A DNA stretch of 64,000 nt. Source: Oikopleura dioica (taxonomy: Eukaryota; Animalia; Chordata). The first letter of the stretch is position 1, and the number at the start of each line of letters is the position of its first letter. The stretch spans positions 10,664,001 to 10,728,000 of the forward strand of contig OU015566.1 of assembly GCA_907165135.1 (NCBI GenBank). The letters are read 5' to 3'. Shown here one piece after another: positions 30,138 through 32,271 of the stretch. A program made the translations under genes and the position numbers. The notes under the pieces were generated by a model. It made no database searches, had not been told where the DNA came from, and saw only the letters and a list, made by a program, of their open reading frames with translations.

Positions 30138-30318
30138 AAACTTTCTCTTGCAGAATAAAAGTAAAACATTAATTGACGTGAGCATGATTTGAGGGCATAT
30201 CTGAGCAGTTAAAACATTATCTATCTCCGGGCAAATATATTCGAGCTCTTCAGATTATGAGAGTGAGTAATTTTGACAAAATTCAAAGCATAAAAGCCCG
30301 AATTTCATACATACATCC

Positions 30319-30556
30319 GGGCTGGTAGATAGCTCAGTTAGCCTCCACGGGGCGGCTTCTTATATGCTCATGCAGGAGCATGTCGCGCGCTATAAAATAT
30401 GGATCCTGCGTAAGCTGTTCGAAGCCCGTCTTTGACTTCGGATGGGCGCTACCAGTCTGTTCCCCCTGAAGGAGCCGAAAGTAAGGGGAGAACTTATAGG
30501 CTAAAAACTCCTAACTGCAGATAAAGGGGTTCTCTGAAGTGGAGGGCAGAGTTTTT
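30319..30556 (+). ncRNA. Candidate Pol III structured RNA, vault-RNA-like core 30319-30458
   Basis: ATAAAA at about -29; A-box TAGCTCAGTTAG (30330-30341); B-box GTTCGAAGC (30417-30425). 10-bp terminal stem GGGCTGGTAG/CTACCAGTCT, internal hairpins, and first T5 at 30552-30556. Confidence 0.55.
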
Positions 30557-30970
30557 ATAGACTAAATAAGTACCAGAGCGCAACATCAATGCTCACGTCT
30601 TTTTAACTTGATTTTTGCGTATTTTATAGAACTTATCTAAGTTATTTTTAGTATATTTGTATATTGACACCATGAATAGAGACAATACTTTGTAGATACA
30701 GGTAAAGTACTAATATTGCCTAGGGCCACATAATGAGAATGTGTGAAATTGCTATGTGTATGAAATTGAATTGAATTGAAAGTGTATGCTTTTCATGTTT
30801 TCTGTAGTTCCGAGGAGGATGCAAATAGTTGTTGTTGGGGGTTGAGTTGATTATTTACGTAGTGGTTTTCCTAAACCTGCCTAGGTGGAAGAAGAACGGT
30901 TAGGCGAACAGAGGGGAGAGGAAAACGTCTAAGAAGGCGTGGCAGTCACGGGACACAGAAGATTTCAGGT

Positions 30971-32271
30971 TTAGCAGGAACAGTTGCCTTCTCCAGGGGG
31001 ATTCTAAAGTGAAAGTAAGCGCAGGTAATTCAACGAAAAACGTACCTCTGGATTCGGTAAAGGCTTGAGTCGAATATCTTGCATGCCACTGTCTGCGGCG
31101 GTTTGTTCTTTGGGCTCCATTCCTGAAAACGCTGATAGAAACTGGCGCTAGAAAGACTTTGAGTACCTGGAAGGGCAGCGGCGACGCGTCTGAAGAGCTG
31201 CTTTACGTTGTATCCGGTTTTGGCACTTGTCTCGATGAACATAACATTAAGTTCTTTGGCTTTTCGCTCGCCTTCGTCGATTGAGACCTGTCTTTTGTCC
31301 GCCAAATCGGTCTAAATTCTTAGTAAGGAGTAACTCTAGCTATTTGAACTCATTCAGCGAGTTGGTAAGCATAAATACGACTAGTTCGCACTCTTTTGCG
31401 GGGTGTGGGTAGCTCAGTTGGCCCGGGTGCGAGTTTCGAGACAACCATGGCAAGCTCGAAACTCGCCTCCAACTGAGTGACAGCATTACCTCTGGGCTAA
31501 GCAGCCGACAGAAGCCCAGGTTAAGGCATAGAGAAAAACACGTGGGCCTGCTAGAATACTGCGGGGTTGCAGATGCGGGACCTGGTTCTCTGGAAGACCC
31601 GGATAACAGAGTTTTGCTACTTACTTTATTACCAACGAGAACAATAATAACGTCGGTTCCTCGTTCTGTGCGTACATCGTCGATCCACTTGTTCGTCTGG
31701 TTGAAGCTGTTGATATTTGTCACATCGTACACGACAACGGCCACAGTTGAATCTCGAATATAACTTGGAATCAGAGATCTGAAAGAAAAACATAAGGATG
31801 AGCGTTTGAGCTACTGAAATATAGGATCAGCTCTCAGGAAGCCGGTTGGAAGCCGGCGTGCTCTTGAAGAGATGACCTGAGATGAAGTACAAAAAATAGT
31901 GGTTATTTACGTTGGCTCAAAATTTTGGCCGAGTTTTCGTCAATAACTTATTGACAATCGAGTAGTCTTTTTGAAGAAAATAAACAAACAAAAGTAGATA
32001 TTTACCTGAATCGTTCCTGCCCGGCCGTATCCCACAATTGCAGTCGCACCGTTCTATCCTCCAAGTACATAGTCTTCGACAAGAAGTCGATTCCGATTGT
32101 CGCTTGATAGGTATTGTCGAAAGAGTCGTACATAAATCTGAACAAGTTTTAAACTTTCATCCACAAGAGAAAGACGTACCTGGTGATAAGAGAGGTCTTT
32201 CCAACACTTTGCTCTCCCAAAAACACGAGTTTGAACTTTCGAAGCGGATTTCCAAAGTCTGTCGCCGCCAT
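30971..32271 (-). CDS. RAB6: Ras-related protein Rab6 (6 exons)
   Basis: [31 protein letters not shown]|[44 protein letters not shown]|[10 protein letters not shown]...GNK|[10 protein letters not shown]...ETSAK...; C-terminal CSC prenylation motif. Confidence 0.97.
31398..31615 (+). ncRNA. Second candidate Pol III structured RNA, antisense within Rab6 intron 3
   Basis: AAGCATAAA upstream (31367-31375); A-box TAGCTCAGTTGG (31410-31421). Long hairpin CTCAGTTGG..GCGAGTTTCGAG/CTCGAAACTCGC..CCAACTGAG. 3' module GGTTCTCTG..CAGAGTTTT shared with the 30319 unit. Confidence 0.45.

Follow-up and report, generated by a model that had tools for sequence, protein, structure and literature searches.

Two tandem single-copy units at the Rab6 locus of Oikopleura dioica: a possible new family of structured Pol III RNAs

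From the perspective of promoter and product, the closest described systems to the locus reported here are small RNA genes transcribed by RNA polymerase III (Pol III), although each of them resembles it only in part. Vault RNA genes combine A and B boxes with an upstream TATA-like element and occur as tandem paralogues. Vault RNAs are 88-140 nt long (PMC7904556). The 7SL (SRP) RNA gene of O. dioica has a TATA-like box at -31, lacks the ACCATAAC box and relies on internal elements. In BC1 RNA, the 4.5S RNAs and tRNA-derived SINEs, a tRNA-like head acts as the internal promoter of an unrelated body with an oligo-U end. The genome of O. dioica is among the most compact and fastest-evolving in animals, and its inventory of non-coding RNAs is poorly known. 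A published survey reported no 7SK homologue for O. dioica and, for the ascidian Didemnum vexillum, found neither vault nor Y nor telomerase RNA (PMC5006418).

The window analysed is a stretch of 64,000 nt of the O. dioica genome, in which two units with features of all these systems lie on the + strand at the Rab6 gene. They are probably paralogous genes arranged in tandem on one strand, at a distance of 1.08 kb, each encoding a structured non-coding RNA (~238 and ~216 nt) made by Pol III, and are best read as a new, predicted two-member family of tRNA-headed RNAs. A preliminary description had proposed paralogous Pol III RNA genes and a possible new family, and this reading fits all the tests. 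It is favoured because the -31 geometry is that of known genes, no Rfam family matches, one hairpin carries compensatory changes and each unit is single copy. The features of the units are as follows.

30238..30253, + strand: unit 1, upstream shared motif TATTCGAGCTCTTCAG, at -81 to -66
30286..30295, + strand: unit 1, TATA-like box AAGCATAAAA, with GCATAAAA starting at -31
30319..30556, + strand: unit 1, predicted RNA of 238 nt, from GGGCUGG to the first T run of at least 4 (30552-30556)
30330..30343, + strand: unit 1, A box TAGCTCAGTTAGCC
30416..30426, + strand: unit 1, B box TGTTCGAAGCC, 10/11 against GGTTCGAANCC
30459..30493, + strand: unit 1, hairpin HL, 9-bp stem and 16-nt loop GAAGGAGCCGAAAGUA (30468-30483)
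30506..30531, + strand: unit 1, hairpin H3, AACUCCU/AGGGGUU, with UGCAGAU (30516-30522) in the loop
30528..30556, + strand: unit 1, tail, with GGTTCTCTG, a 10-nt loop, CAGAG and TTTTT
31341..31357, + strand: unit 2, upstream shared motif TATTTGAACTCATTCAG, at -59 to -43
31367..31376, + strand: unit 2, TATA-like box AAGCATAAAT, with GCATAAAT starting at -31
31400..31615, + strand: unit 2, predicted RNA of 216 nt, from GGGGUGUGGG to the T run 31612-31615
31410..31423, + strand: unit 2, A box TAGCTCAGTTGGCC, in the 5' arm of a long hairpin (partner 31469-31478)
31454..31464, + strand: unit 2, weak B-box-like element AGCTCGAAACT, ~7/10 consensus positions
31492..31519, + strand: unit 2, hairpin HL, stem of 6-7 bp and 14-nt loop AAGCAGCCGACAGA (31499-31512)
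31568..31574, + strand: unit 2, UGCAGAU motif
31584..31615, + strand: unit 2, tail, with GGTTCTCTG, a 14-nt loop, CAGAG and TTTT

The two units are paralogues. All the ordered elements previously described as common to them were recovered on the + strand, in identical order: AAGCATAAA (30286 and 31367), TAGCTCAGTT(A/G)GCC (30330 and 31410), TGCAGAT (30516 and 31568), GGTTCTCTG (30528 and 31584) and CAGAGTTTT (30547 and 31607), and the looser TATTYGARCTC(N)TTCAG was confirmed upstream of both, with unequal spacing (30238 and 31341). The one-base difference between the units in the spacing from AAGCATAAA to the A box also stands, but the distances of 40 and 39 nt given for it do not, as the element starts 44 and 43 nt ahead of the A box, with 35 and 34 nt between the two. 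Some of these motifs are of low complexity, which could favour chance resemblance; this explanation is nevertheless refuted, since collinear exact matches of at least 7 nt sum to 58, a score reached by none of 500 dinucleotide shuffles (mean 18.7, sd 7.5, maximum 49), and both composite patterns are unique to the units. Thus, GTTCTCTG-N5-25-CAGAGTTTT and AGCATAAA-N25-50-TAGCTCAGTT each occur twice in the whole 64.3-Mb genome, at units 1 and 2, against 0 occurrences in the reversed controls. The pattern CCATAAN-N18-30-TTTATAA was too loose to discriminate, with 134 genome matches versus 123 in the control.

BLAST of each unit against the genome shows that both are single copy, and a genome search with the covariance model of the 3' domain (R2) returned the two units at 161.8 and 127.5 bits, with no other match at E <=10. 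The upstream motif has four further matches in the genome, none followed by RNA-gene-like sequence; the shared motif is probably a duplication remnant or a gene-specific upstream element. A scan of metagenome DNA for the tail motif gave one chance match, in a bacterial coding sequence. These copy numbers bear on the possibility that the units are decaying relics, themselves functionless, of a tRNA-derived SINE or of a retroposed Pol III transcript. The tRNA-like head (an A box, plus a B box in unit 1) would suit such an origin, as would a third locus, on C1, that has 19 nt in common with the A-box region of unit 1. However, the third locus lacks the 3' domain, the copies are only two and lie 1.08 kb apart instead of being dispersed, and their similarity reaches the TATA box and further upstream, whereas retroposition does not copy the promoter. 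Their small gene number is a trait shared with the BC1 master gene. Unlike BC1 RNA, the 4.5S RNAs and SINEs, the units have neither dispersed copies nor an A-rich or LINE-like tail, ending instead in a T run, and they combine a duplicated upstream promoter with a covarying hairpin in the body; conservation in discrete motifs and one compensatory stem is not the pattern of neutral decay. A relic origin is thus quite improbable. The more specific suggestion of SINEs sharing a LINE-recognised tail fails on the same two-copy count and shared upstream promoter, and on the absence of a LINE family with this tail, given that the tail pattern without its T run has four genome matches and four in the control.

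Regarding the promoter, the TATA-like GCATAAA(A/T) begins exactly at -31 in both units, as does the TATA box in six U6 genes and in the genes for RNase P, MRP and SRP RNA elsewhere in the genome (TTTATAAG in U6 and CTATAAAA in SRP, at the same position as the boxes of the units). Neither unit is preceded by the ACCATAAC box that the U6, RNase P and MRP genes carry near -65. They therefore depart from the genome's own Pol III type 3 layout (ACCATAAC near -65 plus TATA at -31), of which only the TATA-like part is present, and in this they resemble the 7SL (SRP) RNA gene; SRP RNA itself (C1:10513776-10514072, 194.5 bits) resembles them neither in sequence nor in structure. The A box is exact in both units. 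With reference to GGTTCGAANCC, the B-box consensus of Pol III type 2 promoters, the B box matches at 10/11 positions in unit 1 and at ~7/10 in unit 2. The promoter architecture is hybrid, in that the TATA-like box at -31 is combined with an internal A box (+11/+12) and with a B box of good quality in unit 1 but poor in unit 2. Transcription is predicted to start at the G run (30319 and 31400), a position that in unit 1 is derived from the TATA geometry, and to stop at the first T run of at least 4, which lies at +234 in unit 1, where TTTT is absent internally, and at +213 in unit 2.

Both units fold better as + strand RNA, by 10-19 kcal/mol (-85.1 versus -65.8 kcal/mol for the - strand in unit 1, and -81.5 versus -72.0 in unit 2), with modest z-scores of -1.5 and -2.3, respectively. 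The compensatory changes looked for between the units were found in one hairpin, HL, whose loop AAGSAGCCGAMAG is near-identical in both while 5-6 stem pairs are altered on both sides; when unit 2 is aligned to a model derived solely from unit 1, the HL loops fall in register. Covariation is limited to this hairpin because only two sequences are available. In the modelled structure, to which the alignment of these two sequences was fitted, all cells hold standard pairs, and sliding the 3' partners by 1-3 columns lowers pairing to 25-58%. The pair probability of HL is 0.80-0.97 in unit 1 and, owing to competing folds, only 0.03 in unit 2; that of H3 is 0.63-0.80 in unit 1, and the values for HT and for unit 2 HL and H3 are low, the common structure lying 5-8 kcal/mol above the minimum free energy of each unit. 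The interior of the units had been described as changing freely under a conserved promoter geometry. The geometry is indeed conserved, but the interior contains a hairpin with a conserved loop and a covarying stem. As for the 3' CTCTG/CAGAG stem, it can pair in both units, as proposed, but thermodynamics lends it no support (probabilities of 0.001 and 0.03), nor does covariation, because its sequence is identical in both.

An alternative, perfect 6-bp helix can form in both units between the 3' strand of HL and the stretch at or just before GGUUCUCUG, with unlike sequences (GAGAAC/GUUCUC in unit 1 and CCAGGU/ACCUGG in unit 2) and a like topology. In a more elaborate version of the Pol III family, these models would describe a larvacean-specific family of ribonucleoprotein (RNP) RNAs that acts via the single-stranded loops AAGSAGCCGAMAG and UGCAGAU and switches between two mutually exclusive folds; this proposal is unlikely, and if true it would amount to a regulatory RNA made by Pol III with an inbuilt conformational switch.

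The 5' domains invite comparison with vault RNAs. Pairing involves positions 2-10 with 131-139 and 14-18 with 125-129 in unit 1, and 1-6 with 88-93 and 13-22 with 70-79 in unit 2. It follows the layout of the RF00006 consensus, in which the G-rich 5' end pairs with a segment further 3' and a short internal loop separates this stem from a second helix that holds the A-box GCUCA. In unit 2 the B-box-like element abuts the A-box helix, as in the vault layout. The units could accordingly be taken for long-form Oikopleura vault RNAs, in which the 5' domain (~140 and ~93 nt) would correspond to the actual vault RNA, to which TEP1 binds inside MVP vaults, and the 3' domain would be an addition. The genome contains MVP, its only TROVE gene is TEP1-like (TROVE, DUF4062, STAND NTPase and WD40), and neither Ro60 nor Y RNA was found in it. 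Nonetheless, RF00006 gives no match on either 5' domain, even at E <=10 with stretches of 105-156 nt, none in the 1.6-kb region at E <=10 and none in the window at the gathering score (34 bits). The terminal 5'/3' stem, internal loop and A-box second helix are confined to the 5' domain, the panhandle is not followed by a terminator, and ~100-125 nt of additional structured 3' domain bring the units to 216-238 nt, twice the known length. Furthermore, the top RF00006 match of the genome (25.6 bits) lies in a three-gene cluster on C1, with genes of 130-155 nt, located in an intron of a Rab gene. This cluster has the vault-specific GGUUACUUCG motif, which the units lack, and a terminator directly after the 3' end, and fits the vault RNA slot better. 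The units are thus probably not vault RNAs, and the long-form version is very improbable.

Neither unit matches any Rfam family, at the gathering score or at E up to 10. An RNase P and MRP pair was considered because these RNAs are paralogous and have a common promoter type; both genes lie elsewhere, head-to-head at C4:11.90 Mb. The SRP gene and 7SK candidates were also located elsewhere in the genome, as were the U6 genes, and the 64-kb window has no Rfam match to RNase P, MRP, SRP, 7SK, U6 or Y RNA. Y RNA was rejected on the absence of an RF00019 match in the genome, together with the TEP1-like nature of its only TROVE gene. For telomerase RNA, with TTAGGG taken to be the telomere repeat type, there is no common template, the only candidate being CCUAAC in unit 1, with no counterpart at that place in unit 2. 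ARAGORN found no tRNA, and the long hairpin of unit 2, considered as a miRNA precursor, has Rfam matches at chance level only.

Taken as a pair of Pol III genes, the units probably arose through local duplication of a promoter and its gene, most of the body having diverged since. Selection would have kept the promoter geometry, the 5' panhandle (formed by the 5' end with a YUACC segment, and enclosing the paired A-box GCUCA immediately next to it), the HL hairpin with its conserved loop and covarying stem, a single-stranded UGCAGAU and the GGUUCUCUG...CAGAG-UUUU end. Each RNA may be the scaffold of a small RNP, with its oligo-U end bound by La or a La-related protein and its conserved loops making the contacts with a protein or RNA partner common to both.

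The genomic setting allows a different view, in which the units act in cis. The coordinates of the Rab6 gene, with splice sites read from the sequence and exons assigned by the match of their translations to Rab6, are as follows.

30971..30973, - strand: Rab6 stop codon, protein ending in GNCSC
31167..31311, - strand: next Rab6 exon, TDLADKRQ to AALPG
31312..31624, - strand: Rab6 intron of 313 nt, GTAAGT to TTTAG
31625..31744, - strand: Rab6 exon, ending in VLVGNK

Unit 2 and its promoter (31341-31615) occupy the Rab6 intron in antisense, with the end of the unit 9 nt from the 5' splice site, and unit 1, on the opposite strand to Rab6, lies in a convergent gap, with its end at a distance of 415 nt beyond the stop codon. 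Introns of O. dioica are usually far shorter than 313 nt, and this arrangement would suit units that act as DNA or as transcription units, whether as Pol III/TFIIIC-bound roadblocks or insulators within and shortly past the 3' half of Rab6 or through antisense interference with Rab6 expression, or conserved elements that act on the minus strand, within the Rab6 pre-mRNA. Against both, which even jointly are improbable, the covarying hairpin and conserved loops indicate that an RNA is under constraint, folding clearly favours the + strand, and several proposed pairs of H1, H2 and H3 are G-U wobbles that would not pair in minus-strand RNA. In addition, Rab6 introns at this site in other lineages, in a search with one exon as the query, contain no similar read-through sequence.

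As predicted Pol III genes with no catalogued relatives, the units offer a compact test case, consisting of two paralogues with discrete conserved loops, one of which (unit 2) fills the intron of a host gene in antisense; if they are expressed, the loops would be direct pull-down handles for the partner.

Two open reading frames (ORFs) bear on the sequence of unit 2 outside the assembly. In the ORF of a sister lineage (P0014), which counts against the Pol III gene reading, similarity continues past the exon for 13 residues only, a segment equivalent to the unit 2 tail, with none beyond it in any frame. The other ORF, from an ENA metagenome (P0001), counts in favour of that reading and is the only one retrieved by a protein word search with the intron read-through part; it is the antisense translation of the exon and of nearly all of unit 2 (to 31343), identical at 133/134 residues. 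Its span covers unit 2 from promoter to end, and the single change falls in an unpaired linker.

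Reading of positions 30000-32000 together with alignment of the two unit stretches (unit 1, 30319-30556, and unit 2, 31400-31615, both on the + strand) recovers all the ordered elements attributed to the pair by the preliminary description, in the same order and on the + strand, including the looser upstream element that had been placed before both at unequal spacing. The elements are as follows:

30238 and 31341, + strand: looser upstream element TATTYGARCTC(N)TTCAG, with spacing that differs between the units
30286 and 31367, + strand: TATA-like motif AAGCATAAA
30330 and 31410, + strand: A-box motif TAGCTCAGTT(A/G)GCC
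30516 and 31568, + strand: TGCAGAT
30528 and 31584, + strand: tail motif GGTTCTCTG
30547 and 31607, + strand: 3'-end motif CAGAGTTTT

Chance, which had been named as a possible source of these motifs, does not account for them in a shuffling test: collinear exact matches of at least 7 nt between the units reach a summed length of 58, against a mean of 18.7 (sd 7.5) and a maximum of 49 in 500 dinucleotide shuffles. Across the genome searched (64.3 Mb in 19 contigs, the window being C4:10664001-10728000), the tail hairpin with its T run and the TATA-like box with the A box each occur exactly twice, both times in these units, and never in the reversed control. The shuffle result and the genome-wide uniqueness of the two combined patterns make the observation real and far beyond chance.

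From the perspective of transcription, the units can be compared with reference Pol III genes of the same genome (six U6, RNase P, RNase MRP and SRP RNA), which were located with Rfam models and compared in their upstream regions. All of these have a TATA box beginning at -31 (TTTATAAG, TTTATAAA or CTATAAAA), and in both units GCATAAA(A/T) begins exactly 31 nt upstream of a G run (30319, 31400). The U6, RNase P and MRP genes share the -31 TATA box with the units but carry ACCATAAC near -65, which was not found upstream of either unit, whereas the SRP RNA gene, like the units, has the TATA box without it. An exact A box lies at +12 in unit 1 and +11 in unit 2, accompanied by a good B box in unit 1 (TGTTCGAAGCC at +98) and a weak one in unit 2 (at +55). 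There is no TTTT within either unit, and the first runs of at least four T are at 30552-30556 and 31612-31615; in this genome the SRP RNA gene and the candidate 7SK and vault-like genes likewise end in T4. Judged by sequence, both units are built like Pol III genes whose promoter is a hybrid, as in SRP RNA or vault RNA genes. Transcription would start at the G runs and end in the first T run, giving predicted RNAs of 238 and 216 nt.

In BLAST searches of the genome each unit matches only itself. A covariance model of the 3' domain was made from unit 1 alone, used for aligning unit 2, and then rebuilt from both units (R2); at E <=10 the R2 search returns only the two units (161.8 and 127.5 bits), so the further homologues that such a model might have yielded did not appear in this genome. 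The 14-nt A-box string has one additional match, at C1:7418856, where 19 nt (7418856-7418874) are identical to the A-box region of unit 1 (TAGCTCAGTTAGCCTCCA). This locus on another contig is not matched by the 3'-domain model; it lacks a G-rich leader and is immediately preceded by TTTT. It probably represents a piece of a related head, not a third gene. Since neither BLAST nor the covariance model ties the pair to another locus, the units are a separate two-member family, an addition to the lineage-specific, tRNA-headed Pol III small RNAs, which are a known kind.

SINEs sharing a LINE-recognised tail had been offered as the other explanation. The tail pattern without its T run has four genome matches, the same number as in the control, which argues that no LINE or other repeat carries the tail. 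In the alignment, similarity between the units starts upstream of the TATA-like box and ends at the terminator; the duplicated piece is thus promoter plus gene, which fits local DNA duplication and not retroposition. With two copies only, a co-duplicated promoter and no repeat bearing the tail, the SINE reading was rejected.

Whole-molecule folding is only modestly better than that of shuffles (z -1.5 for unit 1, -2.3 for unit 2), and folding of the + strand is more stable than that of the - strand by 10-19 kcal/mol, an argument for the + strand as the RNA. When the two sequences are compared, four helices emerge as common to both: H1, HL (the conserved-loop hairpin), H3 and HT (the CUCUG/CAGAG tail hairpin). 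H1 joins the 5' end to a conserved YUACC segment (2-10 with 131-139 in unit 1, 1-6 with 88-93 in unit 2), two unit 1 base pairs being absent from both strands in unit 2; just inside it, the pairing partner of the A-box GCUCA is UGGGC in unit 1 and UGAGU in unit 2. HL combines a near-identical loop (GAAGGAGCCGAAAGUA vs AAGCAGCCGACAGA, 12 positions in common) with differing stems (GUUCCCCCU/AGGGGAGAAC vs CUGGGCU/AGCCCAG). H3 encloses a loop with UGCAGAU, its outer AAC/GUU pairs common to both units and its inner pairs different.

The compensatory changes that had been suggested as a check are found in HL. MAFFT misaligns this hairpin, and the covariance model from unit 1 alone brings the loops into register; all cells of the modelled structure then hold standard pairs, and six HL pairs are changed on both sides (five by a slightly different alignment of our own). 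Pairing falls to 25-58% when the 3' partners are slid by 1-3 columns, and the observed value is attained in 10 of 500 shuffles. Though drawn from two sequences and an alignment fitted to the model, this covariation is the best single evidence for selection on the RNA fold. Of the proposed tail hairpin, the sequence stands in both units and the pairing finds no support: being identical, HT offers no covariation, and its pair probability is 0.001 and 0.03, so that it may be conserved as sequence and not as a stem. The structure common to both lies 5-8 kcal/mol above the MFE of each unit, and a perfect 6-bp alternative helix, between the HL 3' strand and a stretch at or just before GGUUCUCUG, is possible in both:

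30488-30493 with 30529-30534: alternative helix of unit 1
31516-31521 with 31580-31585: alternative helix of unit 2

Its sequences differ between the units and its topology is the same; the unit 2 MFE contains it, and it and the fold with HL, H3 and HT are mutually exclusive.

No Rfam family matches the units, either at gathering score over the whole window or at E up to 10 over the unit region and each 5' domain alone, and ARAGORN finds no tRNA. Identity with RNase P or MRP RNA was rejected because the two genes lie together at C4:11.90 Mb, with SRP RNA because its gene is on C1, and with 7SK because of two sub-threshold but convincing candidates at C4:12.93 Mb and C4:9.43 Mb. Promoter and terminator anatomy, the lack of an Rfam family, the presence of only two copies and the HL covariation make paralogous Pol III RNA genes of a new family, as first proposed, the best supported reading and a probable one. 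Each RNA would serve as an RNP scaffold: partners would contact its conserved loops, and its oligo-U end would offer a handle of the La type.

The units might instead be vault RNAs, as their 5' domains (~140 and ~93 nt) are arranged like the Rfam vault consensus, with a terminal stem, an internal loop and a second helix that contains the A box. A vault RNA is expected in this genome, since MVP is present, the sole TROVE gene is TEP1-like and Y RNA has no match. The two protein genes are on contig C2:

C2:6029372-6036160 (- strand) and C2:9048247-9048612 (+ strand): TEP1-like TROVE gene and MVP, listed jointly

After TROVE this gene encodes DUF4062, a STAND NTPase and WD40 propellers, and so has the domain architecture of TEP1. 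Its TROVE-bearing reading frame matches no solved structure by sequence; Ro60 structures are present in the PDB, so a Ro60 would be expected to match, and no Ro60-like gene was found in the genome. The Vault model, however, gives no score on the units, which, unlike vault RNAs, lack a terminator after the panhandle and, at 238 and 216 nt, are twice the known length (88-140 nt; PMC7904556). The best Vault match in the genome (22.4 bits genome-wide, 25.6 bits in a scan restricted to the locus) is one of three 130-155-nt genes that share an intron of a Rab-like gene (C1:16627220-16628820), placed within the extracted stretch as follows:

1500-1632: first vault-like copy
1990-2146: second vault-like copy
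2970-3100: third vault-like copy

All three start with AAGGCGCTYTGGCCGAGTGGTTACTTCG, which contains the vault-specific GGUUACUUCG, and end with CGCCTTTTG; the first contains an internal TTTT. Because this cluster fits the vault RNA slot better, it is very unlikely that the pair are vault RNAs, and paralogous genes of their own family remain the preferred reading.

Unit 2 and its promoter (31341-31615) sit in antisense orientation within a 313-nt Rab6 intron (31312-31624, - strand), where the T run ends 9 nt from the 5' splice site. Unit 1 falls between two stops, that of the upstream + strand gene (30137) and the stop codon of Rab6 (30971-30973, - strand), and is 415 nt past the second. Among metagenome gene calls are ORFs that run from the Rab6 exon on into the unit 2 intron. 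In one of them (P0001, ENA), 133 of 134 residues are the antisense translation of the exon and almost all of unit 2 (to 31343), and the single change falls in an unpaired linker; this near-identity suggests, weakly and indirectly, that unit 2 is nearly unchanged in wild DNA. Another, P0014, comes from a sister lineage in which the exon is the same; behind the exon it retains the 13 residues VxxxTLLSGxxRE, the antisense of the T run, CAGAG, loop and CUCUG of unit 2; past these it has no similarity to unit 2 in any frame, nor do the read-through ORFs of more distant lineages. The intron position (after VLVGNK) is common to many such ORFs from related lineages, with intron sequences unrelated to unit 2 except in P0001 and, over its first 13 residues, in P0014. 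One metagenome DNA scan for the tail motif gave only a bacterial chance match.

Among the other Pol III genes, RNase P RNA (- strand, 115.7 bits) and RNase MRP RNA (+ strand, 122 bits) lie head-to-head, 200 bp apart, at C4:11899511-11900235, each with ACCATAAC near -65 and TTTATAA at -31. No 7SK homologue was reported in O. dioica by a 2016 survey (PMC5006418). Two C4 loci of ~455 nt each (C4:12926932-12927386, - strand, and one ending at C4:9425209, + strand) are likely 7SK RNA genes: they score below the RF00100 cut-off (22.7 and 26.5 bits), start with GGATGTGTGTGACGTGAGATCTGCAG, have a CCATAAG box and TTTATAAA as promoter, and end in a 3' hairpin and T run. The conserved UGCAGAU of the units (30516-30522, 31568-31574) is complementary to AUCUGCA in the GAGAUCUGCAG stretch of the 5' hairpin of the first of these candidates, a 7-mer complementarity that may be due to chance.
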